From assembly GCF_963921235.1 (NCBI RefSeq), contig NW_026948219.1, positions 310,001-374,000 of the forward strand: a DNA stretch of 64,000 nt. The letters run 5' to 3'. The position numbers and the translations under genes are program-made. The notes under the pieces were generated by a model. It was given only the letters and a program-made list of their open reading frames with translations, was not told the origin of the DNA and did not search any database. Below are positions 1 to 61,139 of this stretch, in pieces. Positions within the stretch are counted from its first letter, which is position 1. Each line of letters opens with the position of its first letter. This DNA is from Mobula hypostoma. Its lineage: Eukaryota.

Positions 1-3000
1 CACCCGTCCCACTGCGTTACATTTATTGGAAAAGGCAATGATCAGTGTCTGGGCTGAAATCCTGGGATTCGATGGTGAGGAACGGAAGGAATATTTCATC
101 AAAAATTTTGAAGATCAGTCGGTGGCGGCAGATGTTTTCAAACACGTGAAGGAGAACGAGATCCTGTACACCATGAGCTACAACCCTTCCTACTGCCTGT
201 TCCTCGCTCTGACACTGGGCCCCTTCTTCACACAAAGAGACGGGGACTCGCAGCCATTTCCCAAGACCATCACCCAACTGTACTCCTACTATATTTACAA
301 CATCCTGAAAAACCACGGCCGTGAGATTGAGAACCCCCGTGATGTGTTACTCAGGGTTGGTCAGATGGCCTTCAGAGGAGTGTCCGAGAAGAAGATTGTG
401 TTTACAGGTGGAGATTTAATCAAAAACAATCTGCAGCCTTCCCAATTCCTGTCCGGGTTCCTGATGGAGCTTTTGGAGAGAGAGGATTCTGCCCGGAGCG
501 TGGTGTACACATTCCCTCACCTCACTATCCAAGAGTTTGTAGCTGCCGTCGCACAATTCCTGAATCCACATCCCGGGGATATCCTGAAATTCCTCACTGA
601 ATCCCATAACACGACAGATGGTCAATTTCATGTATTTCTTCGTTTTGTTGCTGGTCTCTCCTCCCCAATGACAGCTCGGGGCCTGGAGGAGTTTCTGGGT
701 CCATTTCCTGAACAAACAACCTGCCGGGTGATTGACTGGGTGAAGAAGGAGGTTAAACGTCAGAGTGGAAACACATGGAGTGAAGCTGGTAAAAGGAGCC
801 TCCTGAACACATTACACTACCTGTTTGAGTCTCAGAATTGTGAGGTCGCACTGGGATCTGTGAAAAAACTTTCATTCAGTGGAATGACACTAACCCTGTT
901 TGACTGCGCTGTCCTGTCTCATGTCATCGGACTCTGTGATACAATAAAACATCTCAATCTGGAGGACTGTCACATTCAGTGTGAAGGAATCCAGCGGCTG
1001 GGACCCGGGCTGTACAAGTGCCAGGAGTTGAGGTAACTTGATTTATCTCTCACTCTGAACTGTGAAACTGTTCCATTGTGTTGTTTCAATGTAAAGGGAT
1101 TCAGGTGAAACTACAATAAGTCAAATTGTGAATGCCCAGGGTATCAGTCAGTAATTCCGCAAGGACGGGAGGGTTCTGTGGTTCCTTGTGAAGGGATGTT
1201 GGAGACTTCATCAGATCAGTGAACAACGGCCATTGGTTTAGTGGTAGTAAATCACAGAAATGGCCCTGTTTCTCACTACCTGTGACACGTACATTGACAA
1301 TGTTCATTCTCACTGTTACTGACACCCGGACCGGCACTGACTGCAGCAGGTGGGTCAGAAATTCACACCCCCTTCCCGGTCGGGACAAGAGACCGTCAGC
1401 AGACTGGCCCAGTGAGAAGGAAAGAAATACCATTGTGAGATTGTCCTCCCCTGCCCTTCCCCGTGTGTGACTATCACCATCAGTCTACCTGTGTGACTGT
1501 GCTAAGTAGCAGATACCCAGACCCCATGGGCACATCTTCTCTCTCGATTATGATCCTCGGTTCAGACCCAACCCTCCCGGACAATCTATTACTGCATCCT
1601 CTCTTCTTGTAGGATAATCGTTTCCCCTCAGACCCTCTTGTGGAACCTCTCATCCCCACTCCCCTTCCTTTCTTGGGGATCTCTTCCCCGTCCCATTCCT
1701 CCTGCGGGCTCTCTCATCCCCATCCCCCTTCCGTTCCTGGGTTTCTCTCTTCATCGCCTTGTGTATCTCTGTTCTCCATCTCCGTTCATCCCGTCCGATC
1801 TCTCTTCGCCATCTCCCTTTCTCCTGTGGGATCTCTCTTCCCCATTCCCCTTCCTCCTGAGAAATCTCTCTTCCCCATCTCCCATCCTCCTGTTGGATCT
1901 CTCTTCTCCACCCCGCTTCCTCAGGTGGGGACTCGTACATAGTCTCTCATCGACACTTTCAGATTAACAAATCTTCCTCGCTGTTGGACTTACTCTCATT
2001 TTCCAACTCTGCCCCTTCCGACCTTCTCAGGTCAGGGAGACTTTTCCAACCATTGGGAAATGACACAGAATATGTGGAGTTTACAGGGTCGCACCAGCAG
2101 GTTAAATTACTAACATTCGGTGAATACCCTGGAGCTGGGCAGTGAGGGACATTGACAATGATGGGAACTCCGATCAGTGATTTACTGAGTATCTGAGTGA
2201 GAGAAATTCCCTCAGACCCACGGTTTGAATCACTTTGTTCATCATTTTTTTTTTCTGTTTGTGTTTAGCCTTGGGTGGAATAAACTGGAAGATTCAGGAG
2301 TGAAACTGGTGTCTGCGGTTCTGAGGAACCCGGAGTGTAAAATACAGAAACTGTGGTAAGTACCAGACTGTGTGAGATTGTGTTTACAGTCACTGGGTGT
2401 CTGACACTGAACATTAAAGTGATCAGTAATTGTGTTACTGATAAACTCTGGGGATTTGTACCGTCTCCTGTCTCTCTGTGTCCTTCACCCCCACTCTCTC
2501 TCATCTCCAGGCTAGACAATGTCGGTCTCACAGATTCTGCTGTCGAGGATCTCGCCTCCGCTCTCAGTACAAACCCATCACTGACGGAGCTGGATCTGGG
2601 TGCTAATAAACTGGGAGATTCAGGAGTGAAACTGGTGTCTGAGGCTCTGAGGAACCCGGAGTGTAAAATACAGAAACTGGGGTAAGTACCAGACTGTGGG
2701 AGATTGTGCTTACAGTCACTGGGTGTCTGACACTGAACATTAATGTGATCAGTAATTGTGTTACTGATAAACACTGGGGATTTGTACCATTTCCTGTCCC
2801 TCTGTGTCCTTCACCCTCACTCTCTCTCATCTCCAGGCTAGACAATGTCGGTCTCACAGATTCTGCTGTCGAGGATCTCGCCTCCGCTCTCAGTACAAAC
2901 CCATCACTGACGGAGCTGGATCTGGGTGCTAATAAACTGGGAGATTCAGGAGTGAAACTGGTGTCTGAGGCTCTGAGGAACCCGGAGTGTAAAATACAGA

Positions 3001-6000
3001 AACTGTGGTCAGTACCAGACTGTGGGAGATTGTGTTTACAGTCACTGGGTGTCTGACACTGAACATTAATGTGATCTGTAATTGTGTTACTGATAAACAC
3101 TGGGGATTTGTACCGTCTCCTGTTTCTCTGTGTCCTTCACCCTCACTCTCTCTCATCTCCAGGCTGAATGACGTCGGTCTCACTGCTAATGGTGCCAAGG
3201 ACCTCATCTCCACTCTCAGTACAAATTGATCACTGACAGAGCTGAGTTTGAATGATAATAATCTGGGAGATTCAGGAGTGAAACTGTTGTCGGACTCACT
3301 GAGGAAGCGGGAATGGAAAATACAGAAACTGTGGTAAGTACCAGACTTTGGGAGATTGTGTTTACAGTCACTGGGTGTCCGACACTGAACACTAATGTGA
3401 TCAGTAATTGTGTTACTGATAAACAGTGGGTATTTATATGGTCTCCTGTCTCTCTGTGTCCTTCACCCTCTCTTTCTCTCATCTCCAGGCTGTGGAATGT
3501 CGGTGTCACAGTTTCTGGTGCCGAGGATCTCTCCCCTGCTATCAATACAAACCGATCATTGACCGAGCTGAAGCTGAATGATAATCAGCTGGGAGATTAC
3601 GGAGTGAAACTGGTGTCTGCGGCTCTGAGGAAAGCGGAGTGTAAAATACAGAAACTGGGGTAAGTACCAGACTGTGGCAGATTGTGCTTGCAGTCAATGG
3701 GTGTCTGACACTGAACTTTAATATCATCAGTAATTACGTTCCTGATAAACTCTGGGGATTTGTACCATCTCCTGTCTCTCTGTGTCCTTCACCCTCACTC
3801 TCTGTCATCTCCAGGCTGAGGAATGTCGGTCTCACAGATTCTGGTGTCGAGGATCTCGCCTCCGCTCTCAGTACAAACCGATCACTGACGGAGCTGAACC
3901 TGAGTGCTAATAAACTGGGAGATTCAGGAGTGAAACTGGTGTCTGCGGCTCTTAGGAACGTGCAGTGTAAATTACAGAAACTGTGGTAAGTACCAGTCTG
4001 TGGGAGATTGTGTTTACTGTCTCTAATCGACACTGAACATTAATGTGATCAGTAATTGTGTTACTGATAAACACTGGGGATTTGTACCGTCTCCTGTCTC
4101 TCTGTGTCCTTCACCCTCACTCTCTCATATCCAGGCTGTATGATGTCGGTCTCACTGCTAATGGTGCCAAGGACCTCATCTCCACTCTCAGTACAAATCG
4201 ATCACTGACAGAGCTGAGCTTGAATGATAATAATCTGGGAGATTCAGGAGTGAAACTGTTGTCGGCTGCGCTGAGGATCTCGAAGTGTAAATTACAGAAA
4301 CTGTGGTAAGTACCAGACTGTGGGAGATTGTGTTTACAGTCACTGGGTGTCTGACTCTGAACATTAATGTGATCAGTAATTGTGTTACTGATAAACACTG
4401 GGGATTTGTACCGTCTCCTGTCTCTTTGTGTCCTTCACCCTCACGATATCTTATCTCCAGGCTGAGGAATGTCGGTCTCACAGATTCTGGTGTCGAGGAT
4501 CTTGCCTCCGTTCTCAGTACAAACCCATCACTGACAGAGCTGAACCTGGGTGCTAATGAACTGGGAGATTCAGGAGTGAAACTGGTGTCTGCGGCTCTGT
4601 CGAATTCGAAGTGTTGTATACAGAAACTGTGGTCAGTACCAAACTGTGGGAGATTGTGTTTAGAGTCACTGGGTGTCTGACACTGAACATTAATGTGATC
4701 AGTAATTGTGTTACTGATAAACACTGGGGATTTGTACCGTCTCCTGTCTCTCTGTGTCCTTCACCCTCACTCTCTCTCATCTCCAGGCTTTTTGATGTCA
4801 GTCTCACTGCTAATGGTGCCAAGGACCTCATCTCTACTCTCAGTACAAGTCGATCTCTGAAAGAGCTGAGTTTGAATGATAATAACCTGGGAGATTCGGG
4901 TGTGAAACTGGTGTCTGCGGCGTTGAGGGACTCGGAGTGTAACATACAGAAACTGTGGTAAGTAGCAGACTGTTGGAGATTGTGTTTACAGTCACTGGGT
5001 GTCTGACACTGAACATTAATGTGATCGGCAATTATCTTACTGATACATACTGTGAATTTGCACCATCTCCTGTCTCTCTGTGTCCTTCACCCCCACTCTC
5101 TCTCATCTCCAGGCTGTGGAATGTCGGCCTCACAGATTCTGGTGCCGGAGATCTTAACGCCACTCTCGGAGGAAACCCATCACTGACGGTGCTCAATCTG
5201 AATAATAACAAGTTGGAAGATTCAGGAGTGAAACTGGTGTCTGCGGCTCTGAAGAAATCACGTTGTAAATTACAGGAATTGGGGTAAGTACTAGTCTGTA
5301 TGAGATTGTGTTTACAGTCACCGAGTGTCTGACACTGAACATTAATGTGATCAGTAATTGTGTTACTGATAAACACTGGGGATTTGTACCGTCTCCCATC
5401 TCTCTGTGTCCTTCACCCTCACTCTCTCTCATCTCCAGGCTGAGGGATGTCGGTCTCACAGATTCTGGTGCCAAAGATCTCGCCTCCGCTCTTAGTACAA
5501 ACCGATCATTGATGGAGCTGAACCTGAATGATAATAAACTGGGAGATTCAGGAGTGAAACTGGTGTCTGAGGTTCTAAAGAAGGCGAACTGTAAAATCCA
5601 AAAACTGTGGTAAATACCAGAGAGTGGGAGATTGTCACTGCATATTTGACACTGAACATTAATATGATTAGTCATTATATTATTGATTAACAGTGTGAAT
5701 ACGTACAGTTTCCTGTCCCTCTGTGTTCTTCAACCTGATTCTCTCTCTTCTCCAGGCTGCGGGATGTCGGTCTCACAAATCCTGGTGCCAAGGACCTCGC
5801 TTCCGCTCTCAGTTCGAACCCATCACTGACGGAGCTGAACCTGGGTGCTAATAAACTGGGAGATTCAGGAGTGATACTGCTGTCTGCGGCTCTGAAGAAT
5901 TCGGAGTGTAAAATACAGAAACTGTGGTAAGTACCAGACTGTGGGAGATTGTGTTTACAGTCACTGGGTGTCTGACACTGAACATTAATGTGATCAGTAA

Positions 6001-9000
6001 TTGTGTAACTGATAACACTGGGGATTTGTACCGTCTCCTGTCTCTCTGTGTCCTTCACCCTCACTCTCTCTCATCTCCAGGCTAGACAATGTCGGTCTCA
6101 CAGATTCTGCTGTCGAGGATCTCGCCTCCGCTCTCCGTACAAACCAATCACTGACGGAGCTGAGTTTGAATGATAATAAACTGGGAGATTCAGGAGTGAA
6201 ACTGGTGTCTGCGGCTCTGAGGAAGCCGGAGTGTAAAATACAGAAACTGTGGTAAGTACCAGACTGTGGGAGATTGTGTTTACAGTCACTGGGTGTCTGA
6301 CACTGAACATTAATGTGATCAGTAATTGTGTTACTGATAAACACTGGGGATTTGTACCGTCTCCTGTCTCTCTGTGTCCTTCACCCTCACTCTTTCTCAT
6401 CTCCAGGCTGAGGAATGTCGGTCTCACAGATTCTGGTGCCAAGGATCTCGACTCCGCTCTCAGAACAAACCCATCACTGACGGAGTTGAACCTGAGTGGT
6501 AATAAACTGGGAGATTCAGGAGTGAAATTGGTGTCTGAAGCTCTAAGGAACTCAGAGTGTAAAATACAGAAACTGTGGTCAGTACCAAACTGTGGAATAT
6601 TGTGTTTACAGAGACTTGGTGTCTGACACTGAACATTAATGTGATTTGTAATTATATTACTGATTAACAGTGTGGATATGAACAGTCTCGTGTCTCTCTG
6701 TGTTCTTCACCCTCACTCTCTCTCATCTCCAGGCTGCAGAATGTCGGTCTCACAGATTCTGGTGCCAAGGATCTCGTCTCCACTCTCAGTACAAGCCCAT
6801 CACTGATGGAGTTGAACCTGAATGATAATGAACTGCGAGATTCAGGAGTGAAACTGGTGTCTGCAGCTCTAAGGGACTCGAACTGTGAAATACAGAAACT
6901 GTGGTCAGTATCAAACTGTGGGAGATTGTGTTTACAGGCACTTAATGTCTGACTCTGAATATTAATGTGATCAGTAATTGTGTTACTGATAAACACTGGG
7001 GAATTGTACCGTGTTCTGTCTCTCTGTGCCCTTCAAACTCACTCTCTCTCATCTCCAGGCTCAGGGATGTCGGTCTCACAGATTCTGGTGCCGGCGATCT
7101 CGTCTCCGCTCTCAGTACAAACCGATCACTGACGGAGCTGAACCTGGGTGCTAATAAACTGGGAGATTCAGGAGTGAAACTGGTGTCTGCGGCTCTGAGG
7201 AAATCGGAGTGTAAAATACAGAAACTGTGGTAAGTACCAGACTGTGGGAGATTGTGTTTACAGTCACTGGGTGTCTGACACTGAACATTAATGTGATCAG
7301 TAATTGTGTTACTGATAAACACTGGGGATTTGTACCGTCTCCTGTCTCACTGTGTCATTCACCCTCAGTCTGTCTCATCCCAGGCTGTATGATGTCGGTC
7401 TCACTGCTAATGGTGCCAAGGAGATCATCTCCACTCTCGGTACAAATCGATCACTGACAGAGCTGAGTTTGAATGATAATAAACTGGGAGATTCAGGAGT
7501 GAAACTGGTGTCTGCGGCTCTGAGGGTCTCGGAGTGTAAAATACAGAAACTGTGGTAAATACCAGACTGTGGGAGATTGTGTTTACAGACACAGGGTGTC
7601 TGACACTGAACATTAATGTGATCAGTAATTGTGTTACTGATAAACACTGGGGATTTGTACCGTCTCCTGTCTCTCTGTGTCCTTCACCCTCACTCTCTCT
7701 CATCTCCAGGCTGAGGGATGTCGGTCTCACAGATTCTGGTGTCGAGGATCTCGTCTCCGCTCTCAGTACAAACCCATCACTGACGGAGCTGAACCTGAGT
7801 TATAATAAACTGGGAGATTCAGGAGTGAAACTGGTTTCTGCGGCTCTGAAGAATTCAGACTGTAAAATACAGAAATTATGGTCAGTAGCAGAATGGGGTA
7901 GAGTTTGTTTACGGTCACTGGGTGTCTGACACTGAACATTAATGTGATCAGTAATTGTGTTACTGATAAACACTGGGGATTTGTTCCGTCTCCTGTCTCT
8001 CTGTGTCCTTCACCCTCACTCTCTCACATCTCCAGGCTGATGAATGTCGGACTCACAGATTCAGCTGCTGGAGATTTTGTGTCCGCACTCGGTACAAAAA
8101 CTTCACTAATGGTGCTCACCCTGAATAACAATAAACTGGGAGATTCAGGAGTGAAACTGGTGTCTGCGGCTCTGATGAAATCACGGTGTAAATTACAGGA
8201 ATTAGGGTAGGTACCAAACTGTAGGAGGTTGTGTTTAGAGTCACTGGGAGTCTGATACTGAACATTAATGTGATCAGTAATTGTGTTACTGATAAACACT
8301 GGCGATTTGTACCGTCTCCTGTCTCTCTGTGTCCTTCACACTCACTCTCTCTCATCTCCAGGCTGAAACATGTCGGTCTCACAGATTCTGGTGCCGGCGA
8401 TCTCGCCTCCGCTCTCAGTACAAACCCATCACTGACGGAGCTGAACCTGAATGATAATCATCTGGGAGATTCAGGAGTGAAACTACTGTCGGCGGCTCTG
8501 AGGAAGGCAGACTGTAAAATACAGAAACTGTGGTAAATAGCCAACAGAGGGAAATTGCCACTGGGTGTCTGACACTGAACATTAATGTGATTAGTAATTA
8601 TGCTCCTGCTTAACACTGTGGATATGAACAGTCTCGTCTCTCTTTCTGTCCTTCACCCTCACTCTCTCTCATCTCCAGGCTGGAGAATGTCGGTCTCACA
8701 GATCCTGGTGTCGAGGATCTCGTCTCCGCTCTCAGTACAAACCCATCACTGACAGAGCTGGACCTGGGATTAAACTCGCTGACAGACCGATCTGTCCCCG
8801 CTCTCCGCCACCTCATACTGATCCTCCCAAGTCTGGAGCGGATCCTGTGAGTGTTTGTGTTAATGTTCAATGTGATAAAATATCAGCGGATCCGCGGGTT
8901 TTCTGGTGATATTTGTCTGTGAGTGTTGTTGAAACATTAACCCCAGTCCCCTGTTACTGACACTGTTGTGTAATCTGTTTATTTCATCTTTATTCTCCCA

Positions 9001-9098
9001 TCTGTTTCAGGCTGTACGGGAATCAGTTCAGTCAGACAGGGAGGAAGGAACTGAGATCTCTGCAGGAACCCAGACCCGGACTGACAGTGGATCTGTGA
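1..9098 (+). CDS. NLR (NACHT + RI-type LRR, NLRP3/NLRC3-like) gene, 5'-partial, multi-exon; LRR exon 3 contains a premature stop
   Basis: Exons with GT-AG boundaries, all phase 2: <1-1032, 2269-2355, 2511-2681, 2837-3007, 3163-3333 (TGA 3227-3229), 3489-3659, 3815-3985, 4135-4305, 4461-4631, 4787-4957, 5113-5283, 5439-5609, 5756-5926, 6081-6251, 6407-6577, 6733-6903, 7059-7229, 7384-7554, 7710-7880, 8036-8206, 8362-8532, 8679-8846, 9011-9098 (stop TGA 9096-9098). Confidence 0.9.
2..1032 (+). CDS. Large NACHT-associated exon (sensor-1 TRP, HD1, WHD, HD2, first LRRs)
   Basis: Frame from position 2: [12 protein letters not shown]...EILGF, YNPSYC, winged-helix [30 protein letters not shown]. Ends at AG|GTAACT donor (1033). 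Confidence 0.93.
1600..1930. repeat. Degenerate pyrimidine-rich minisatellite in the first NLR intron
   Basis: Recurring GGATCTCTCTTCCCCATCTCCC-like units, about 33 bp. Confidence 0.6.
2356..8846 (+). repeat. Tandem array of ~326-bp intron+LRR-exon units (about 20 units)
   Basis: Unit = GTAAGTACCAGACTG...CTCATCTCCAG intron (~146-155 nt) plus a 171-nt exon encoding [57 protein letters not shown]. Confidence 0.97.
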
Positions 9099-9750
9099 AC
9101 ATCTGAATGTGTGAACATCCCAGCCTGCGGGATGGGGACATTTTGGCCGATTCCCAGCCCTCCCCTTTAACTCCCCCCTTACCTTTAATGGCCGCGTGCC
9201 AGGTTTAATTCCCAACGGTTTTAACGGATCGGGCGCCACGCTCGCGCTGTGTGTCATTCATTGCGCTCCCGTAGTGACGTATTTCTGCCTGTTGTACCGC
9301 GGCGCAGCTTCCGCCGGATGTGCGGGTTGAGACCCCGCCCACGTGAGACCCTGGGGAATTACGCAGTCAGGAAGATACCGGAGGCCGGGGCTCAGTCTGG
9401 GACACCGGTGTCCCGGGGTGGGATTATCCCGGGAGAGAATCCTTTTGCTCCCTTTGCTGAGGACGGTGCATTCGGCAGTCTGGCCGATATAATGATGTTA
9501 AATAGACAAATACCTCGGCAGTGACCCTGGATCTGCAGCGATCCCGGTCACGGCCCTGAAGTGTGATTTTATTATCATCGGTTCCCCGATGCAGAATGAC
9601 AGTGAGAAACGGGACTGATTATTCAACCGGTCACCCGTTGTTGCCGGTCAGTTAATTGTGTGTGACTGTGAGTGAGTCGGAAGCAGTTTATTTATTCCCG
9701 CATGTCAGCAGCTCACACATTGTTTAATTTACATTTGTCATGATGAAATC

Positions 9751-9857: not shown

Positions 9858-9923
9858 GTCTCATCTCTGGGCTGAGGAAGGCCGGACTGGCAGAATCTGG
9901 GTGGCCAGGATCTCATCTCCACC
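9858..9923 (+). pseudogene. Decayed orphan half-LRR exon downstream of the polyA site
   Basis: TCATCTCTGG|GCTGAGGAAGGCCGGACTGGCAGAATCTGG...GGATCTCATCTCCAC resembles TCATCTCCAG|GCTGAGGAATGTCGGTCTCACAGATTCTGG...GGATCTCGTCTCCAC; acceptor AG lost. Confidence 0.6.
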
Positions 9924-11574: not shown

Positions 11575-13252
11575 TGAATTACAACAATTGTTCACCCTAG
11601 TTTGGCAAAAGAATAAATCAGGGAAGGTAGTGCACCCGTGGCTGACAAGGGAAATTAGGGATAGTATCAATTCCAAAGAAGAAGCATACAAATTAGCCAG
11701 AAAAAGCGGCTCACCTGAGGACTGGGAGAAATTCAGAGTCCAGCAGAGGAGGACAAAGGGCTTAATTAGGGAAGGGGGAAAAAAAAAAAGATGATGGCAG
11801 GGAACTTAAAAACTGACTGTAAAAGCTTTTATAGATATGTGAAAAGAAAAAGATTGGATAAGACAAATGTCGGCCCCCCTACAGACAGAGACAGGTGAAT
11901 TGATTATGGGGAGCAAGGACATGGCAGACCAATTGAATAATTACTTTGGTTCTGTCTTCACTAAGGAGGACATAGATAATCTTCCGGAAATAGTAGGGAA
12001 CAGAGGGTAAAGTGAGATGGAGGAACTGAGGGAAATATATGTTAGTAGGGAAGTGGTGTTAGGTAAATTGAAGGGATTAAAGGCAGATAAATCCCCAGGG
12101 CCAGATGGTCTGCATCCCAGAGTGCTTAAAGAATTAGCCCAAGAAATACTGGATGCATTAGTGATAATTTTTTAAAACTCTTTAGATTCTGGACTAGTTC
12201 CTGAGGATTAGAGGGTGGATAATGTAACCACACTTTTTAAAAAGGAGGGAGAGAGAAACCAGGGAATTATAGACCGGTTAGCCTAACATCGGTAGTGGGG
12301 AAAATGCTAGAGTCAGTTATCAAGGATGTGATAACAGCACATTTGGAAAGCGGTGAAATGATCGGACAAAGTCAGCATGGATTTGTGAAAGGAAAATCAT
12401 GTCTGACGAATCTCATAGAATTTTTTGAGGATGTAACTAGTAGAGTGGATAGGGGAGAACCAGTGGATGTGGTATATTTGGATTTTCAAAAGGCTTTTGA
12501 CAAGGTCCCACATAGGAGATCAGTATGCAAATTTAAAGCACACGGTATTGGGGGTAAGGTATTGGTGTGGGTGGAGAATTGGTTAGCAGACAGGAAGCAG
12601 AGAGTGGGAATAAACGGGACCTTTTCAGAATGGCAGGCAGTGACTAGTGGGGTACCGCAAGGCTCAATGCTGGGACCACAGTTGTTTACAATATATATTA
12701 ATGACTTGGATGAGGGAAGTAAATGCAGCATCTCCACGTTTGCGGATGACACGAAGCTGGGTGGCAGTCTTAGCAGTGAGGAAGATGCTAAGAGGATGCA
12801 GGGTGACTTGGATAGGTTGGGTGAGTGGGCAAATTCATGGCAGATGCAATTTAGTGTGGATGAATGTGAGGTTATCCACATTGTTGGCAAAAACAGGAAA
12901 AGAGATTATTCTTTGAATGGTGGCCGATTAGGAAAAGGGGAGGTGCAACGAGACCTGGGTGTCATTATACACCAGTCATTGAAAGTGGGCATGCAGGTAC
13001 AGCAGGCGGTGAAAAAGGCGAATGGTATGCTGGCATACATAGCAAGAGGATTCGAGTACAGGAGCAGGGAGGTACTACTGCAATTGTACAAGGCGTTGGT
13101 GAGACCACACCTGGAGTATTGTGTGCTGTTTTGGTCCCCTAATCAAAGGAAAAATATCCTTGCCATAGAGGGAGTACAAACAAGGTTCACCAGATTCATT
13201 CTTGGGATGGCAGGACTTTCATATGATGAAAGACTGTATCGACTAGGTTTAT
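11575..13252 (+). mobile_element. CR1 LINE ORF2 (reverse transcriptase), degenerate
   Basis: PWLTREIRD; KADKSPGPDGLHPRVLKE; YLDFQKAFDKVPH; GVPQGSMLGPQLF; FADDTKL; in-frame stops upstream of 12295. Confidence 0.93.
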
Positions 13253-13254
13253 GT

Positions 13255-14305
13255 AAACAACAGGAATTCTGCAGATGCTGTAAATTCAAGCAACACACAT
13301 CAAAGTTGCTGGTGAACGCAGCAGGCCAGGCAGCATCTCTAGGAAGAGGTACGGTCGACGTTTCAGGACGAGACCCTTCGTCAGGACTAACTGAAGAAAG
13401 AGTGAGTAGAGATTTGAAAGTGGGAGGGGGAGGGGGAGATCCAGAATGATAGGAGAAGGCAGGATGGGGAGGGGTGGAGCCAAGAGCTGGACAGGTGATT
13501 GGCAAAAGGGATACGAGAGGATCATGGGACAGGAGGTCCGGGAAGAAAGACAAGGGGTGTGGGGGGAATCCAGTAGATGGGCAAGGGGTATATACAGAGG
13601 GACAGAGGGAGAAAAAGGAGAGTGAGAGAAAGAATGTGTGTATAAAAATAAGTAACAGATGGGGTACGAGGGGGAGGTGGGGCATTAGCGGAAGTTAGAG
13701 AAGTCGATGTTCATGCCATCAGGTTGGAGGCTATGCAGACGGAATATAAGGTGTTGTTCCTCCAACCTGAAGTGTGGCTTCATCTTTACAGTAGAGGAGG
13801 CCGTGGATAGACATGTCAGAATGGGAATGGGATGTGGAATTAAAATGTGTGGCTACTGGGAGATCCTGCTTTCTCGGGCGGACAGAGCGTAGGTGTTCAG
13901 CAAAGCGGTTTGCATACCAAGGGGCTGGAGACTACCTAGACGATATATGAAGTGTTGCTCCTCTAACCTGAGTTGAGCCTCATCATGGCAGTAGAGGAGG
14001 CCATGTATGGACATATCTGAATGGGAATGGGAAGAAAAGTTGAAGTGGGTGGCTACCGGGAGATCCTGCCTGTTGTTGGATGGAGTGGAGGTGCAATCCT
14101 CCGCAACTTCTGCCACCTCCAAAAGGACTCCACCACTAAGCACATATTTCCTTCTTCACCCCTCTCTGCTTTCCGCAGGGATCGGTCCCTCCGCGACTCC
14201 CTTATCCGCACATCCATCCCCACGGATCTCCCACCCGACACTTATCCCTGTAAGCGTAAGTGCTACAGCTGTCCCTACACCTCTATCTCTTGCCACCATT
14301 CAGGG
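13255..14305 (-). mobile_element. Penelope-like element 3' region (GIY-YIG end) with a tandem partial copy and an inverted segment at ~14090-14305
   Basis: Minus-strand HDEAQLRLEEQHFIYRLGSLQPLGM; plus-strand AFRRDRSLRDSL...CKRKCYSCPY; terminal TCTGCAGATGCTG motif and a hammerhead. Confidence 0.85.
13351..13390 (-). ncRNA. Minimal type I hammerhead ribozyme (Penelope-associated)
   Basis: Minus strand AGUC-CUGACGA-AGGG UCUCG UCCU-GAAAC-GUC-GACC: CUGANGA and GAAA cores, stem II, GUC cleavage triplet. Confidence 0.75.
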
Positions 14306-24545: not shown

Positions 24546-27535
24546 ATGGCTCTACCAACAATCCGGCATGTGAGCATTGTATTTTACCCTATTCTCGCAG
24601 CTTTCGGTGTTCCGGGTAAGTCGACACATCCTCTGTCTGAAATGTTAGGGACGGACTTCTATTAACAGTCATTTCACTGGGTGTTGTTTACCGGCGAAAC
24701 CGACCCAGCGCGGAGACACGGCAGACTACCGCTGCTGAACGGTTCGTCTCCGCTCCACACGCTGATGCAGGGTCAAGTTCACTGTCACCCGACCCCCCAT
24801 CCCGCCCCCAGAGTTCATCATAGACGATGCTGCTGAAATTCAGGGAGATCAATCCTCTCCGCTGTTCACCACTGTCAGCGTAAATTTGATACCGGGATTG
24901 ATGCAGATTGAAATGTATTTTCTGATCTAACTTTTGGTGAAAGAGCAGTAGAACAGTACGATCTGTGGGAACGTTGCGGATTGTACCAACTGCCACCGTA
25001 GTTGAATTTTTTCTCTCTCTCTCTGTCCTCTCTCTGTCTCTGTCTCTGTCTCTGTCTCTCTGTCTTTCTGTCTCCCTGTCTCTCTCTCCCTGTCTGTCCT
25101 CTCTCNNNNNNNNNNNNNNNNNNNNNNNNNNNNNNNNNNNNNNNNNNNNNNNNNNNNNNNNNNNNNNNNNNNNNNNNNNNNNNNNNNNNNNNNNNNNNNN
25201 NNNNNNNNNNNNNNNNNNNNNNNNNNNNNNNNNNNNNNNNNNNNNTTTTTGGATTTCCGATCAAACCTTTGATTATATGTCTTTCCCGTACCAGTTGCGA
25301 ATTATAGTAAATATAGCTAGCATAAGAATGGGGTGTCCAGCTGGAGATTTGAATTAATTTCTCCCTATCGCACTTTTAAGATGATAATGAATATGATCAA
25401 AAATAGCGGATATATCCAAGTGAGAGTTTATTTATTGATAGACGTTTCGGAAACTATCCGAGTTTAAGCTAGATTGCGTACAAGCGACACTAGACGAGTC
25501 AGTGAAGTCCGATTCTGTTGACCAGGCCCTGCGCTCGTTCATTGACTAAACGGAGGGAACGAGTGCATCGGCTTCACCCTGGGGCTGATGACCGACAGCG
25601 GGCACGGCCCCACTTACTCCGGGCCTGTACCGGCTCAATAATAATGAGTTCCGTTGGGTGGATTCTGTCGACTGCACATCAGCCGATCCTCCTACAGCCA
25701 CTGTGTTCAGCTGTGTCACGGCTCTCATTCACTACGGCTGGTGTCTGAATGGGGCTTCGAGGGTAAGAGCCATTGAAATGACGATCCCAGGGGTAGGGAA
25801 AGTAGGGCGCAAGGGAGATATGGGAGAAGATGGTGATCTCCCCTATTTTTCTGGGTTGTGATGGCGAATGAGCAGCAGTGCTGCCCCCTCTCGGTTACAT
25901 CGCCTAAGTGACAACGACAGCACGTCACCAGCAACTTAACCAGGAGCAGTGCTGCCCCCTCTCGGTTACATCGCCAAGGTGACATCGCGAGCACGTCACC
26001 AGCAACTTAACCAGGAGCAGTGCTGCCCCCTCTCGGTTACATCGCCAAGGTGACATCGAGAGCACGTCACCAGCAACTTAACCAGGAGCAGTGCTGCCCT
26101 CTCTCGGTTACATCGCCAAGGTGAAATCGAGAGCACGTCACCAGCAACTTAACCAGGAGCAGTGCTGCCCCCTCTCGGTTACTTCGCCAAGGTGACATCG
26201 AGAGCACGTCACCAGCAACTTAACCGGGAGCAGTGCTGCCCCCTCTCGGTTACATCGACAAGGTGACATCGAGAACACGTCAGCAGCAACTTAACCAGGA
26301 GCAGTGCTGCCCCCTCTCGGTTACATCGCCAAGGTGACATCGAGAGCACGTCACCAGCAACTTAACCAGGAGCAGTGCTGCCCCCTCTCGGTTACATCGC
26401 CAAGGTGAAATGGAGAGCACGTCACCAGCAACTTAACCAGGAGCAAATGCGCAGTTCGGCTGCAAACCGTTTTAGTTCACTGAATGAGGAGTTTTGATTC
26501 TTTCTTGGAACATATTTCCCCGGTAATTTTGCCCATCACTGTCGGAAAAGTATTTTCACATTGAATTCCAAGAACGCTTCTCCTCGCCCTGTTTGTAACT
26601 CACAAATTGTGACTCTTTCCCTAGCGAACCTATTGACAATGGTGGTCCTCTTCCGAGGGAATTGCGGCCTTTCCAAATGTATATCGCTCTACATGGCTTT
26701 CATGGCAATGGCTGATCTCCTGGTGATGATCGTCTCTGTAATTGCGTATCATATCGTCATGTACCAGTTTCCAAAATCCTTCCTGTCCTATACATCCGTC
26801 TGTAAGTTCGTCCTGTACTTCAATTCGACCAGCCTGCAAACCTCGGTCTGGTACACTGTCCTGTTTACAGCCGATCGGTTTGTAGCAATCTGTTTTCAGA
26901 AGCTTAAAATGAAATATTGCACGGCGAGGACAGCTGTTGCCGGCATTATAACCGTGTCGCTCCTGATGCATTTGCAGAACGTCCCGTATCTATTAGAGTA
27001 TAAACCTGTGCGTGTAGTTAACGGTATTCAATGGGGCTCTCAGCCGAGCTCGTGGTTCCTTACGTCTCTTGTGGGCGTCGCATTCTCCTTTCTGCAGAGT
27101 ATTTTAACAGTTATATTACCTTTTGTTCTGATAACCCTGTTTAACTGTCTGACGGTAAGGCGCATTTTATTAGCCAGTAAATTGCGCCGTGGACTGCGTG
27201 GTCACAGCAGTCAAACACAGAAGGATCCGAAGATGGAAAGCCGCCGGAAATCCATCATTTTACTCTTTAGTGTGTCCGGCAGTTTCATTCTGTTGTGGCT
27301 GACGGCCGCCGTGAGCTTTCTGACCACCCGACTCACAGCAACCGCGCATTACGACGGCGATTACACCGACTCTGCCTATGTCGCCACTGAAGCCGGCGAC
27401 ATGCTCATGTATCTGAGTTCCTGCACGAACGCCTGCATTTATACAGCGACCCAGGCTAAGTTTAGAGAAGAATTGCGGCTGGTGTTAAAATACCCTTGGA
27501 CTTTATTTTTAAAATTGGTTACAAAACACGGGTAA
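24546..27535 (+). CDS. Class A GPCR, GPR139-like family; exons 24546-24615 and 26625-27535, 326 aa
   Basis: Exon 1 MALPTIRHVSIVFYPILAAFGVP|GTAAGT joins in phase 1 to CCCTAG|CG AAC (ANLLTMVVL). TM2 MAMADLL, TM3 VCKF...TADRFVAIC, TM5 LPFVLITLFN, TM7 SSCTNACIY. ATTAAA at 27658. Confidence 0.9.
25011..25245. other. (CT/CTGT)n microsatellite running into a 140-N assembly gap (25106-25245)
   Basis: Seen directly. Confidence 0.97.
25873..26445. repeat. 71-bp tandem repeat, 8 copies, in the GPCR intron
   Basis: GAGCAGTGCTGCCCCCTCTCGGTTACATCGCCAAGGTGACATCGAGAGCACGTCACCAGCAACTTAACCAG starting at ~25873, 25944, 26015, 26086, 26157, 26228, 26299, 26370. Confidence 0.97.
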
Positions 27536-48535: not shown

Positions 48536-48801
48536 ACTTCACCACATTCACAGTAGGTGATCGGCCTCTCCCCAGTGTGAACTCAGTGATGCACAAATGG
48601 TTGATTTGGCTGAGAGAATTTTTTCCACAGTCTGAGCAGGTGATCGGCCCCTCCCCAGTGTGGACTCGCTGATGTTCCTTCAGTTGAGATGACGTAATAA
48701 ATCCCTTCCCATAGACAGAGCAGGTGAACGGCCATTTCCCTGTGTGTCAGCAGGTGAAATGACCAATTGAATCCCTTCCCACAGACTGAGCAAGTGAATG
48801 G

Positions 48802-49926
48802 TCACTCCCTGGTGTGAAGTGACTGGTGTTTCAGTAGATGAGATGACCGAGTGAATCCCTTCCCACAGTCTGAGCAGGTGAACGGCCTCTCCCCAGTGTG
48901 AACTCGCTGATGTACCTTCAGTTGAGATGACTCTACGAATCCCTTCCCACACACTGAGCAGGTGAATGGCCTCTCCCCAGTGTGAACTGACTGGTGTCTC
49001 AATACAGCAGATGACTGAGTGAATCCCTTCCCACACACTGTGCAGGTGAATGGCCTCACTCCAGTGTGAACTGACTGGTGTCTCAGTACAGCAGATGACT
49101 TTGTGAAACCCTCCCCGCAGTCTGAGCAGGTGAACGGCCTCACCCCACTGTGAATTCGCTGATGAACCTTCAGTTGATATGACTGAGTGAATCCCTTCCC
49201 ACAGTCCGAGCAGGTGAAAGGTCTCTCCCCAGTATGATCTCGCTGATGTACCTTCAGTTGATATGACTCAGTGAATCCCTTCCCACAGTCTGAGCAGGTG
49301 AACGGTCTCTCCCTGGTGTGAACTTGCTGATGTGTCAGTAGGTGAGCGAACAGTTTGAATCCCTTCCCACAGACTGAGCAGGTGAATGGCCTCTCCCCAG
49401 TGTGAACTCGCTGATGTACCTTCAGATTAAATGAGCAAGTGTATCCCTTCCCACAGTCTGAGCAGGTGAATGGTCTCTCCCTGGTGTGAACTTGCTGGTG
49501 TGCCTTCAGATGAGATGACTGAATGAATCCCTTCCCACAGTCTGAGCAGGTGAACGGCCTCTCCCCAGTGTGAACTCGCTGATGTACCTTCAGTTGAGAT
49601 GACCGAGTGAATCTCTTCCCACAGTCTGAGCAGGTGAATGGCCTCTCCCCAGTGTGAACTCGCTGATGTTCCTTCAGTGCAGATGACAGAGTGAATCCCT
49701 TCCCACAGTCTGAGCAGGTGAATGGCCACTCCCCGGTGTGAACTGACTGGTGTCTCAGTAACTGAGATGACACAGTAAATCCCTTCCCACAGTCTGAGCA
49801 GGTAAACGGCCTCTCTCCAGTGTGAACTCGCTGATGTACCTTCAGTTTACATGATTTACTGAATCCCTTCCCACAGTCTGAGCAGGTGAACGGCCGCTCC
49901 CCGGTGTGAACTCGCTGGTGAGCCAT
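48802..49926 (-). CDS. Tandem C2H2 zinc-finger protein, 13 fingers (374 aa)
   Basis: 13 CxxC-x12-HxxxH units with HTGERPF linkers; degenerate fingers on both sides. Confidence 0.88.
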
Positions 49927-50319
49927 TAGGTCAGATAACCGAGTGAAACCTTCCCCACAAATTCAGCAGATGACCAGCCTCTGCTCGATGTGAACTGACT
50001 GGTGTGTCCACAGGTGGGAAGACCGACTGAATCCCTTCTCACACACAGAACAGGGGAATGGCCTTGTCCCAGTGTGAACTTGCTGATGTACCTTCACTTG
50101 AGATGACCCGACTGAATTCATTCCCACTGCCTGAGCAGATGAATGGGTTCCCCCCTTTGTTGACGTACAGCTGGGATTTTCTTTTATCTACTGTCAATTT
50201 AAAGTGCCACAGTTTTAAAGCCATGAAAACATTTTCTGCCCAGATGAATGGTTGGTCTGCACAGCTGTTAAAATGAATTAAATGAATATTAGTATTATTT
50301 AATGTTCTTGTCACAGAGT

Positions 50320-57998: not shown

Positions 57999-60635
57999 GG
58001 TTTCTGACCCTGCTCCGTTGAACATCCAACTGATGGTTTCCCATTCTGCTTTCAGTCTTTAGAGGAGAGTGGTGTTTTCTAACAACCCTTTAGAAGCAGG
58101 GAAAATGACCCATATGTGGAAATGAGCCGTGAACAAGGAGGTTAACTACCAATGTCATTCTTCCTCAGCCCAGAGATTAGAGGAGCGAAGAACATGTCAG
58201 ACAGAACTGCAGTCTGCTCGACTTCAAGGGAAACCTCTTCACCCATAGAGTGGTGACTGCTTGGAACCCATCATCACGGGGAGAGCAAAAGGGGAACAGG
58301 GGAGGATTTAAAAGGACTGTTGTGGAACTGAATCACTGGCAGGGTGCAGCCAGCCTGAGTTGACTCTCTCCTGTATACTAGTTGTGTTATAAATTTACTA
58401 AGTACCGGAGACAGAGTTTAAAATAGAACTGATTTATTTGTCTCAGATCCAGAATATTAAACTCCAGTCCCATGAGAGGTGAATGTGCAGCAGAAGAAAC
58501 TCGTCCCATGCCCAGTGACCAGGGTGCAGAACTGGGTGTGATGAGCAGCAGCAATAATTGCAGAGTTCATCACCGACAATCACTGTTGAAATTGCATTCA
58601 GCAACGGCGATGGACAAATATCCAGCATGCAGCTTATTGAAACTTTCTCCCCGGTGTGAACCCAGTAGTGTGTCACAAGTGTAAAATGCTGTAAGGTTTC
58701 ACTGCTAATGTAATGGCCTCTCTGCAATGTTTCACTGCTGAGGTAATGCGTTCTTTTTTAAAATTACTTTATTTACAATTTTCAATTTTACAAAGACAAA
58801 ATATATTGAAGATAAAGAGCACGGACAAAACAAATCGAAAACAGAAAAGCAAAAAGGCTGCCAGACAATTTACTAGATTACTTAAATAAACTTTCAGAAA
58901 AAGAGTGGACACAATAGTAACATCACGGTTTCTCTGTAGCAGCAATGTTTAGGTTACGACTAAAGATAACAGGGTTTTGAATGCGGGGCTATCCAATGAC
59001 AGAAATGTTCTCTCTTGTGAGTCTGGAAGAGAGATTTTCGTGCTCTTTTGCTGGGGAGAGATGAGAAGACGTGAATGGAGAGAGTGGGCCCTTTTTCTCT
59101 TTTTTTTTGTTTTCTTTACTAACCCTATAGTCAAAGTCAGAATTATAAAGCTCAATCGTTTAATCACATATTGTGTACTGTTTGTTATTTCAGGGTACTG
59201 ATTTGTAACAGGGGAGACATCGCACAACATCCACCCAAACAAGATTTTTTAAGTTTGGCTGGGCTGGGGGCTATCACCCCCTATATTAAGCTGCTAGCTG
59301 AAGCGAGAGTTATGTTAGGCAAGATGACTGAGTGAATCGCTTCCACATTCACACCAGGTGAATGGCCTTTCCCCAGTGTGAACCTGGTAGTGTGTCATAA
59401 GGATAGATAACTGAATGAATCCTTTACCACATTCACAGCAGGTGAACGGCCTCTCCCCAGTGTGAACTCAATGATGCAAATTTGGTTGATTTGGCTGAGA
59501 AAATCTCTTCACAAAGTCTGAGCAGCTGATCGGCCTGTACCCTGTGTGAACTCGCTGGTGTCTCTGCAGGTGAGATGGCCAACTGAATCCCTTCTCACAC
59601 ACTGAGCAGGTGAATGGCCACCCCCCAGTGTGAACTAACCGGTGCGCTTGCAGGTGAGAGGACCAAGTGAATCCCTTTCCACAGTCTGAGCAGGTGAATG
59701 GCCTTTCCCCGGTGTGAACTCGCTGGTGTGCCTTCAGTTGGGATGAGCAAGTGCATCCCTTCCCACAGACTGAGCAGGTGAATGGCCACTCCGCTGTGTG
59801 AACTGACTGGTGTCCCAGTAGCTGAGATGACAAAGTGAATCCTTTCCCACAATCCGAGCAGGTGAACGGCCTCTCCCCGGTGTGAACTCGCTGGTGTGCA
59901 ATTAGGGTGGATGACCGAGTGAATCCCTTCCCGCAGTCCGAGCAGGTGAATGGCCTCTCACCAGTGTGAACTGACATGTGTACCAGTAGGTTAGATGACT
60001 GACTGAATCCCTTCCCACAGTCCAAGCAGGTGAATGGCCTCTCCCCAGTGTGAACTCGCTGATGTACCTTTAGTTCAGATGACCGAGTGAATCCCTTCCC
60101 ACAATCTGGGCAGGTGAACGGCCTCTCCCCAGTGTGAACTGACTTGTGTACCAACAGGTGGGATGACTGAGTGAATCCCCTCCCACAGTCCAAGCAGGTG
60201 AACGGCCTCTCCCCAGTGTGAATTCGCTGATGTACCTTCAGTTGAGACGAGAAAGTGAATCCCTTCCCACAGTCTGAGCAGGTGAATGCCCACTCCCCAG
60301 TGTGAACTGACTTGTGATCCAGCAGGTCGGATGACCGTTTGAATCCCTTCCCACAGTCCAAGCAGGTGAATGGCCTCTCTCCAGTGTGAACTCGCTTGTG
60401 AGTCATTAGGTCGGATGATCGAGTGAATTCTTCCCCACAAATTCAGCAGATGACCAGCCTCTGCCCAGTGTGAACTGACTGGTGTGTCCACAGGTGGGAA
60501 GACCGACTGAATCCCTTCTCACCCACAGAACAGGTGAATGGCCTTGTCCCAGTGTGAACTTGCTGATGTACCTTCAGTTGAGATGACCGACTGAATCCAT
60601 TCCCACTGTCTGAGCAGATGAATGGGTTCCCCCCT
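57999..60635. repeat. Segmental duplicate of 46411-50155 (ZF gene plus 3' flank)
   Basis: Colinear near-identical flanks and a shared solo LTR; upstream CR1/Rex mosaic also shared (52010-53220 vs 61700-62980; 51600-52010 vs 63030-63430). Confidence 0.88.
59468..60406 (-). CDS. Tandem C2H2 zinc-finger protein, 10 fingers (312 aa)
   Basis: 10 canonical fingers. The exon probably starts at the acceptor TTTTACAG|GTT (60814), with degenerate fingers and an in-frame TGA (60443-60445) upstream of the ATG. Confidence 0.87.
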
Positions 60636-61139
60636 GTGTAAAATGACGGGAATGCCAGTTGGTCAGATGATCGAGTGAATCCGTCCCCACAATCTGAGCA
60701 GGAAGGATGATCGAGTGAATCTCTTGCTCCACTTCTTAAATATCTGGACAGAGACAGCAAAACTGGCGTGTTGTGTTCGAGATTCCAGTAGACAAATTCC
60801 TTGTCATTTTTAACCTGTAAAAAAAGATTTACAAAATCCATCAATCGGTGTTGGACAACCTTTCAGATGAGGTCACTTGAGTTGTCAAAGTGTATTCTGG
60901 CATCACACTGTTACAGTGAAGTTCAACCCAAGTAGGAGAGCAAAATCATCTTCTAACTGGGCACAGTGCTGGTATCTGGAATGACCATCAATTCTCTGAT
61001 GCTCTTCCTGTCTCTATAATAATGGGGCATTTCTGCCATCTCCAATCTGTGACCTGGCTTAGTATGACTCTCTCCATTGGTATTATTCCCTGTTCCCACT
61101 GAGCTGCATGGGTGCCTGGCCCCACAATAACTGTAACAC

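Follow-up and report, generated by a model that had tools for sequence, protein, structure and literature searches.

The gene of ribonuclease inhibitor (RI; RNH1) has one exon per 57-aa unit, arisen by exon duplication; each unit consists of two leucine-rich repeats (LRRs), and the units have diverged in a stand-alone protein of ~15-16 repeats. NLRP3 introns are long and unrelated to each other. For the LRRs of NLRs the standard is an exon of 171 bp that preserves the frame and has its border within a beta-strand, and skipping of exon 5 has been shown for human NLRP3 (Hoss et al. 2019, PMC6642158); in mammalian NLRP3 and other NLRPs such an exon covers two RI-type repeats, one of 28 aa and one of 29 aa. 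The zebrafish NLR-B30.2 (NLR-C) genes are a massive lineage-specific expansion by duplication and gene conversion; each LRR has its own exon, the C-terminal LRRs of groups 2b and 3b are "extensively duplicated", and multi-zinc-finger genes lie scattered among the NLR genes (Howe et al. 2016, PMC4852459). The whale shark genome paper describes an NLR family near the NLRPs that has expanded specifically in chondrichthyans; its accessible text deals with gene counts and phylogeny and does not mention intragenic LRR exon arrays (Tan et al. 2021, PMC8455134). In a different kingdom, the ROCO and NB-ARC-TPR genes of brown algae, candidate immune receptors, give each repeat unit an exon of its own, and these exons share one length and keep the frame (in the ROCO genes, which carry a ROC-COR GTPase instead of NACHT, they are 72 nt long and hold one LRR); exon duplication and shuffling, stop-inactivated exons, variable exposed residues and positive selection are reported, with speculation on combinatorial or somatic diversity (Zambounis et al. 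2012, PMC3341825; 2024 follow-up, PMC11378527). Immune or recognition genes with tandem interchangeable cassettes also include Dscam1, with its mutually exclusive exon clusters, and lamprey VLR, whose germline gene is incomplete, with flanking cassettes (summarised in PMC3341825).

The locus described here lies at the beginning of a 64,000-nucleotide stretch of Mobula hypostoma DNA (the window), the start of which falls inside a large NACHT exon. The part of this exon that is present matches Pfam NOD2_WH (1.6e-12) and NLRC4_HD2 (9.6e-14), has NLRP3 as its best solved relative (4.6e-22) and is 87-89% identical to batoid "NLRP3-like" proteins. An all-against-all search returned 1482 representative proteins at E<=0.001 and a length-restricted word search 987 at E<=1e-50; the close matches are nearly all batoid "NLRP3-like" proteins, from Hypanus, Hemitrygon, Mobula and Pristis. 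A domain search of the relatives' proteins found NACHT, WH, HD2 and LRR_6 and did not find a pyrin domain. The profile of the exons that follow matches ribonuclease inhibitor best (1e-81, seven matches in register, positions 1-56), then NLRP14, NLRP5 and NLRP3. These similarities identify the array as the part of an NLRP3-like (NLRP-related) NACHT-LRR gene that encodes the LRRs. The family of this gene is batoid-specific, very large and hugely expanded in rays; the NLRP-related family of cartilaginous fishes in the whale shark genome paper is probably the same one (PMC8455134). The zebrafish genes belong to another lineage and NLR clade, and the ray LRRs have no B30.2 exon 3' of them, although multi-zinc-finger genes are interspersed in the ray window too.

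The array itself is a tandem repeat with a 326-bp period (Tandem Repeats Finder: 20.0 copies, 84% matches, score 8949, at 2279-8766) in which each unit is a 171-nt exon plus a ~155-nt intron; the 3' 77 nt of the first LRR exon are already part of it. The initial annotation had claimed 19 exons, all of 171 nt and sharing one phase, and this is borne out by the exon table and splice-site check. Its flanking exons, the donor variants that it assigned to individual exons (Table 1) and the residue pairs and quartets that it listed, all found at unit positions 2-3 and 28-31, are likewise accurate. Canonical GT donors and AG acceptors are present at all 23 exon boundaries within the window. On the acceptor side a pyrimidine tract and CAG precede 19/19 array exons, whose first base is G; the 3' ends are TG or GG in 19/19, and the junction codon is Trp or Gly for every exon-exon combination. 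Since all junctions are in one phase, any subset of exons joins in frame, as a combinatorial reading presupposes. Eight of the 19 donors differ from GTAAGT at +3 or +5.

Table 1. Features of the gene (window coordinates).
Feature	Position	Strand	Remarks
Large NACHT exon, 3' part (winged-helix and HD2 helical domains)	1-1032	+	open frame of 344 codons; donor GTAACT at 1033
Intron, NACHT exon to first LRR exon	1033-2268	+	CT-rich 32/33-bp tandem repeats at 1648-1929
First LRR exon, 87 nt, one 29-aa repeat (half exon)	2269-2355	+	array phase; tblastn 86% to P0001 residues 860-888; splice sites
Tandem array, 20 introns (146-155 nt) alternating with 19 171-nt exons	2356-8678	+	
LRR exon 1, clade D	2511-2681	+	donor GTAAGT
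LRR exon 2, clade D	2837-3007	+	weak donor GTCAGT; 1 nt from exon 1, same peptide
LRR exon 3, clade B	3163-3333	+	in-frame TGA; Cys51 to Trp; both splice sites consensus
LRR exon 4	3489-3659	+	
LRR exon 5, near exon consensus	3815-3985	+	
LRR exon 6, clade B	4135-4305	+	
LRR exon 7	4461-4631	+	donor GTCAGT
LRR exon 8, clade B	4787-4957	+	
LRR exon 9, clade C	5113-5283	+	
LRR exon 10	5439-5609	+	donor GTAAAT; most divergent intron (146 nt) directly 3'
LRR exon 11	5756-5926	+	
LRR exon 12, clade D	6081-6251	+	
LRR exon 13	6407-6577	+	donor GTCAGT
LRR exon 14	6733-6903	+	donor GTCAGT
LRR exon 15, near exon consensus	7059-7229	+	
LRR exon 16, clade B	7384-7554	+	donor GTAAAT
LRR exon 17	7710-7880	+	donor GTCAGT
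LRR exon 18, clade C	8036-8206	+	donor GTAGGT
LRR exon 19	8362-8532	+	donor GTAAAT
Terminal LRR exon, 168 nt	8679-8846	+	array phase; donor GTGAGT; homologue of 56-aa exon skipped in P0308
Last intron, diverged relative of array intron	8847-9010	+	14-nt inverted match (8860-8873) to array-intron core
Final coding exon	9011-9098	+	stop TGA at 9096-9098; peptide matches C-termini of relatives P0004 and P0007

In exon size, phase, border and repeat content the ray gene is like the mammalian NLRPs, and it shares the 57-aa two-repeat unit with RI. It differs in number and age: solved NLRP3 chains contain five full-length 57-aa LRR units by the exon profile, against 19 exons here, the array introns are short and 88% alike, and compared with RI there are ~42 repeats, on a NACHT module, in young units (82% nucleotide identity). 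The tail after the NACHT exon is ~1197 aa, whereas among 151 annotated relatives the median is 171 aa and the longest single-gene tail ~631 aa; none of the LRR regions in annotated relatives approaches this length, and the family offers no precedent for a 42-repeat product.

The exons and introns of the array have had different histories. Exon clades B (exons 3, 6, 8, 16), C (9, 18) and D (1, 2, 12) have 97-100% support, but the intron trees are unresolved stars in which these clades are never recovered, and the distance matrix of the exons does not correlate with that of the introns (rho 0.09 and -0.003). Furthermore, variants common to more than one unit make up 48% in exons against 33% in introns (p = 0.014). 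Because the two histories are uncoupled, sequence must have been exchanged between units, during or after amplification. Exon types B and C were not found in the proteins of 276 relatives, and diversification was therefore local to the array or the species.

It is clear that the introns are not nearly invariant, as had been stated; 98/155 (63%) of their columns vary, compared with 106/171 (62%) in the exons, and indels are present in 5/20 introns and 0/19 exons (p = 0.047). Mean pairwise difference is 11.6% for introns and 17.6% for exons. The prominent variation that had been noted at the x positions of the beta-strands is partly upheld: amino-acid diversity is enriched at LRR positions 5, 7 and 8 (permutation p = 0.002) but not over the wider x set of positions 2, 3, 5, 7 and 8 (p = 0.11), and there are hot spots of the same strength at unit positions 12 and 15 in the helix, at position 22, and at positions 48-50 in the helix-to-strand loop. 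Exposed LRR positions are the most variable here, whereas the zebrafish LRRs are "not particularly variable" (PMC4852459). A site-wise dN/dS check across the 19 exons did not bear out diversifying selection, with no site class above 1, in contrast to the brown-alga receptors. Scaffold positions have a pN/pS of 0.28-0.32 against 0.6-0.7 overall, and pairwise variation by codon position is 18.5%, 15.0% and 19.6%. Only one exon bears a stop, where random placement predicts 6.8 +/- 2.0 (P<=0.001), a significance that is overstated because the simulation treated shared differences among the 356 from the exon consensus as independent. In the array exons selection has preserved the open reading frame as well as the hydrophobic scaffold, while solvent-exposed residues drifted or diversified at a roughly neutral rate.

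The one stop is an in-frame TGA at unit codon 22 of exon 3, where the other units have CGA or CCA; the initial annotation's text on the array does not mention it. With this codon, an mRNA that includes all exons lacks full-length coding capacity in this assembly. A CpG-type C-to-T change may have created the stop in this haplotype; a full-length protein would then need in-frame skipping of exon 3, or else the allele would be null or truncated.

Of the possible readings, one germline gene with a young, tandemly amplified LRR exon array, in which an ordinary NLR unit gives an extra-long product, is held with moderate confidence. Alternatively, the array was functional until recently and this copy is now a pseudogene, with exon 3 inclusion leading to nonsense-mediated decay or to a truncated NACHT protein with ~five LRRs. 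The stop lies between consensus splice sites, the near-equal variation of the codon positions and the overall pN/pS point to weak constraint, and big NLR families are prone to pseudogenes and presence/absence variation, as described for zebrafish (PMC11192531). However, the ~3.6 kb that encode the tail and the 1 kb of NACHT exon contain no other lesion, the stop amounts to one CpG transition that could be a haplotype polymorphism, the array exons are free of frameshifts, and the splice dinucleotides are kept throughout; decay is judged unlikely. An inflation of a shorter array by mis-assembly is very improbable. Tandem repeats of 326 bp are difficult to assemble, and units 1 and 2 are nearly alike (8 differences in 326 nt), but no two of the 19 units are the same: exon plus intron, any two are at least 8 nt apart and most 20-80 nt, indels are specific to single units, and the only N run (25106-25245) is outside the array.

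Splice sites paired across short introns favour efficient constitutive splicing. This bears on the proposal that cells or conditions include differing in-frame subsets of the 19 exons, a combinatorial repertoire that is judged rather improbable. It would fit the single junction phase with its constant Trp or Gly codon, the suboptimal donors, a full-length product that demands skipping of exon 3, exon diversity at intermediate frequency beside star-like introns, and the peak of diversity at repeat positions 5, 7 and 8. Human NLRP3 skips one such exon (PMC6642158), and the 56-aa terminal LRR exon is exactly what distinguishes the annotated isoforms P0305 and P0308 of one relative. Against this, 171-nt exons that keep the frame are a general trait of NLRs and nothing peculiar to this locus (PMC6642158), dN/dS gives no support, and the introns (146-155 nt) have strong pyrimidine tracts. 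The Dscam-like docking/selector RNA also fails: the array-intron core has one 13/14 inverted match to the last intron, but 15% of random 36-nt window pieces reach its duplex energy of -17.4 kcal/mol, so that it is no better than random genomic sequence; moreover, Dscam1-style choice of a single 57-aa exon would not yield an LRR domain. Somatic diversification of the DNA, by VLR-like copy choice, RAG-type joining or programmed unequal recombination within the array, is extremely improbable. Twenty near-identical direct repeats are a good recombination substrate, and exon-limited exchange did occur in germline history, but there are no RSS-like heptamer/nonamer pairs (CACAGTG is absent from the + strand of 1033-9100), and no feature here demands a somatic process. 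The cassettes of lamprey VLR flank an incomplete gene and enter it by copying of DNA; those of the ray are ordinary, complete exons with canonical splice sites in an otherwise intact gene.

In the favoured reading, that of a young amplified array, the family's usual block, a phase-preserving 171-nt exon of one 28-aa and one 29-aa RI-type repeat, would have been multiplied together with its ~155-nt intron until there were 19 copies; the 326-bp unit would most likely have undergone unequal crossing-over or replication slippage. The introns, short and uniform with good splice sites, would favour including the exons jointly, though the eight off-consensus donors would favour some skipping. It is plausible that an LRR exon is occasionally skipped in frame, as in NLRP3; a dedicated combinatorial system is not indicated. 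Were a splicing repertoire to exist, one gene would give many receptors with differing concave surfaces and lengths. The amplified array would be expected to give a cytosolic sensor whose extra-long LRR solenoid has ~42 repeats, and it is size that is the unusual feature of this gene, an exceptionally long example of an already known architecture.

All 19 of the 171-nt exons that the initial annotation had placed in the array, each in a common phase, were recovered (19/19) by reading the sequence and by a scan for 171-nt stretches bounded by AG and GT, and Tandem Repeats Finder reports the region as a single array with a period of 326, 20.0 copies and 84% matches. Each array exon begins with G and ends in TG (15 exons) or GG (4 exons), so that any joining of exons leaves Trp or Gly as the split codon. 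The array introns are 155 nt long, save five of 146-154 nt, and the donor variants (GTAAGT; GTCAGT after exons 2, 7, 13, 14 and 17; GTAAAT after 10, 16 and 19; GTAGGT after 18) match exactly those first listed exon by exon. A single phase is kept throughout all junctions of the gene model, whose tail past the NACHT exon comes to 1197 codons, or about 42 repeats; the initial annotation had put the total at about 40.

Positions of the NLR gene model, its LRR exon array and other features of the window
Feature	Position	Strand	Remarks
Large upstream exon	ends 1032		donor GTAACT
CT-rich tandem repeats	1648-1929		32/33-bp period; in intron separating NACHT exon and first LRR exon
LRR exon before array	2269-2355		87 nt
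Tandem array	2279-8766		
Array exons 1-7 (starts)	2511, 2837, 3163, 3489, 3815, 4135, 4461		
Array exons 8-13 (starts)	4787, 5113, 5439, 5756, 6081, 6407		
Array exons 14-19 (starts)	6733, 7059, 7384, 7710, 8036, 8362		
Terminal LRR exon after array	8679-8846		168 nt
Complement of intron core	8860-8873		last intron
Direct copy of intron-core motif	about 8927-8938		
Final exon	9011-9098		ends in TGA
Decayed LRR exon 5' end	9871-9920		
Reverse-transcriptase ORF	12295-13449	+	RVT_1 9.1e-24
(TC)n tract	25012-25105		
N run	25106-25245		
71-bp tandem repeat	25874-26445		8.1 copies, 95% matches
Intronless ORF, 324 aa	26561-27535	+	rhodopsin-family 7TM, Pfam 7tm_1 8.4e-19
C2H2 zinc-finger array	48751-50146	-	84-bp period
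C2H2 zinc-finger array	59315-60702	-	84-bp period

The repeats are of the ribonuclease inhibitor (RI) type. A profile built from the exons finds both RI and the LRRs of NLRPs: RI comes first at 1e-81, with seven matches in register over the full 56 positions, and NLRP14, NLRP5 and NLRP3 follow. Seven RI units can be aligned along their whole length with the 57-codon units, which have the 28-/29-residue alternation. The exon border lies between L-x and L of the LxxLxL motif, i.e. inside the beta-strand. An AF2 model of one exon, of low confidence (pLDDT 55.6) and used for helix positions only, places helices at 8-20 and 36-46, and the 622-aa LRR tail of P0022, the protein of a relative, was modelled as 22 strand-helix units (AF2, pLDDT 70). 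In NLRs generally a 171-bp exon encodes one 28-aa and one 29-aa repeat, with the exon border in the beta-strand and strict preservation of frame (Hoss et al. 2019, PMC6642158). The array exons are like this standard in their 171 nt, their identical phase and their border inside the beta-strand, and the modularity of the array is therefore ordinary; what is unusual is the copy number and the youth of the copies. The architecture is a known one, of which this array is an extreme case.

NACHT-associated domains are present in window 2-1033 (PF17779 NOD2_WH, 1.6e-12; PF17776 NLRC4_HD2, 9.6e-14), NLRP3 chains are the closest solved structures to the upstream exon (4.6e-22 over residues 1-324), and single C-terminal LRR exons match PF13516 LRR_6. 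The window begins downstream of the P-loop; PF05729 NACHT is found at 1e-37 in relatives that are 87-89% identical over the shared exon. Relatives carry NACHT, WH, HD2 and LRR_6. No PYD was detected with Pfam (E<=0.001) in two of them, P0001 and P0004; the N-terminus of this gene lies outside the window, and “NLRP3-like” is the automatic NCBI name.

When 1.8 billion representatives were searched without a profile, 1482 relatives were returned, the close ones being named “NACHT, LRR and PYD domains-containing protein 3-like”, “12-like” or “14-like” and coming from Hypanus sabinus, Hemitrygon akajei, Mobula species and Pristis; sharks match more weakly. Since the best identity to any protein is only 89% among the matches listed, this gene's own protein is absent among them. 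An NLRP-related expansion in chondrichthyans is already described (PMC8455134). In 151 relatives the tail after the NACHT exon has a median of 171 aa, and the longest from a single gene is about 631 aa. “Uncharacterized protein” models of 2000-2150 aa also occur in Pristis and Mobula (P0159, P0162, P0293 and similar); P0159 and P0162 each contain two Walker A motifs and so look like read-through fusions of neighbouring NLR genes, not long LRR arrays.

The array in this haplotype carries one nonsense exon. In exon 3 a TGA stands in frame where seven units have CGA and nine have CCA, a CpG-type transition; the nearly invariant Cys is also replaced by Trp in this exon. Random placement of the 356 differences from the exon consensus, following the observed spectrum, gives an expectation of 6.8 +/- 2.0 stop-bearing exons against the 1 observed (P<=0.001), shared differences among these not being independent. 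Indels are present in 5/20 introns and 0/19 exons (p = 0.047). Few stops together with the lack of exon indels indicate that the exons have been kept translatable. For the whole exon pN/pS is 0.6-0.7, falling to about 0.3 at scaffold positions, and at concave positions it is 0.5-1.0 according to the count used. An excess of nonsynonymous change at the concave positions, as the concave-face diversification proposed by the initial annotation would imply, was not seen: omega is <= 1 there, both in pooled pairwise counts and with variants counted once. The sole class above 1 is a small hand-picked helix set (1.4, few sites). The rate at which the exposed residues evolve is close to neutral, which is to be expected of any weakly constrained LRR surface and is not proof of diversifying selection.

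The introns, described at the outset as nearly invariant, prove not to be so, with 98/155 columns varying vs 106/171 in the exons and a similar number of distinct variants per site (0.79 in introns, 0.91 in exons). The mean pairwise difference is 17.6% for exons and 11.6% for introns; the exons are the more diverged because their variants are more often common to several units (48% vs 33%, p = 0.014), and CpG sites, 7 in the exon consensus and 1 in that of the intron, account for a lesser share of the excess (non-CpG pairwise difference 14.3% vs 10.4%). Variation is not limited to the concave face. Positions 5, 7 and 8 of both repeats (unit positions 0, 2, 3, 28, 30 and 31) are enriched relative to other non-scaffold positions (permutation p = 0.002), with amino-acid diversity peaking at unit position 2, but the wider set of x positions is not (p = 0.11). 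Variability is equally high at unit positions 12 and 15 in the helix, at 22, and at 48-50 in the helix-to-strand loop; the helix positions are taken from the low-confidence AF2 model and the description of RI-type repeats in PMC4598782.

The tree of the exons contains three strongly supported clades, B (3, 6, 8, 16), C (9, 18) and D (1, 2, 12). Trees built from the upstream or the downstream introns are star-shaped, with zero supported inner branches; the three clades were never recovered in intron bootstrap trees, AU tests giving no formal rejection (p 0.06-0.33), and there is no correlation between the exon and intron distance matrices. Exon types B and C were not found among 276 relatives' proteins. 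The simplest reading is that the 326-bp unit would have been amplified first, and that short, largely exon-sized tracts would then have been exchanged among the units. Alternatively, the introns may have been homogenised while exon diversity was retained. Beyond the array, about 770 nt past the stop codon, is the decayed 5' end of an LRR exon, preceded by an acceptor remnant and identical to the exon consensus at 38/50 nt (alignment score 43 vs a shuffled maximum of 25); this relic probably reflects past turnover of units at the 3' edge of the array.

Three mechanisms by which the exons might be sampled were considered. The intron core ACACTGAACATTAA, found in most of the 20 array introns, was shown by repeat search to be 13/14 complementary to a site in the last intron. 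The match count is unusual (P = 0.002, ungapped-match Markov null) but the pairing energy is not, since 15% of random 36-nt pieces of the window form a duplex at least as stable as the local one (-17.4 kcal/mol), and a Dscam-type docking/selector site was rejected; whole-intron duplex energies, inflated by low-complexity CU/GU pairing, were discarded. No RAG-mediated V(D)J-type recombination signal, sought as an exact RSS heptamer plus a nonamer (<=2 mismatches, 12 or 23 +/-1 spacing), is present on either strand within 1033-9100. A VLR gene is laid out in the germline as an incomplete gene with flanking cassettes that have no splice signals; here every cassette is bounded by an AG acceptor and a GT donor, with intact coding exons on the 5' and 3' sides of the array, and VLR-type somatic assembly was also rejected. 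A search of the introns for structured RNA or snoRNA gave only a chance Rfam match (E = 0.88), and the fold of the array intron is not unusually stable (z = -0.71).

The array is real: a set of LRR exons in an NLRP3-like NLR gene of a ray, carried in the germline and amplified recently. The ordinary reading, that of one germline NLR gene with an extended LRR exon array, is probably correct. Some skipping of exons is suggested by the eight suboptimal donors, by the perfect splice sites of the stop-bearing exon 3, and by an isoform pair in Hemitrygon akajei (P0305/P0308) that differs by exactly the 56-aa terminal LRR exon, the one LRR-exon-skipping case among 378 relatives. The shortness and uniformity of the introns and their strong pyrimidine tracts speak against a regulated repertoire, since splice sites that pair across a short intron favour efficient constitutive splicing. 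It is quite improbable that the gene holds a repertoire in which splicing includes varying in-frame subsets of exons and exon 3 is always dropped, so that one NLR locus yields many isoforms varying in the length and exposed surface of their LRRs, with selection keeping the exon types distinct while the introns stay alike. Nothing observed points to combinatorial sampling beyond the exon modularity generic to NLRs. A null or decaying allele, to which the nonsense codon of exon 3 would belong and with which the otherwise translatable exons agree poorly, is unlikely, if less so than a repertoire. Candidate products are one very long LRR solenoid, a form in which exon 3 is skipped, several in-frame isoforms, or nothing (null allele).

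Elsewhere in the window, the two zinc-finger arrays, with ORFs of 374 and 312 aa and 9-13 fingers, are found 40-50 kb beyond the NLR gene on its downstream side. In zebrafish, multi-zinc-finger genes are scattered among those of the NLR-B30.2 family (PMC4852459), and the neighbourhood of this NLR gene is alike in containing them too. The reverse-transcriptase ORF is a retroelement, situated between the NLR gene and the remainder of the window. The 71-bp tandem repeat adjoins the N run and the (TC)n tract.

Combinatorial sampling of the exons, if it occurred, would give jawed vertebrates a new way of diversifying receptors. Three questions become tractable with this array in a cartilaginous fish: whether LRR length is polymorphic between individuals, whether a nonsense-bearing exon is skipped, and whether exposed LRR residues are under diversifying selection. 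If translated whole, it would be among the longest RI-type LRR solenoids on a NACHT module and a clean, young example of how the ligand-sensing domain of an NLR grows, by amplification of an exon-intron unit together with sequence exchange limited to the exons.
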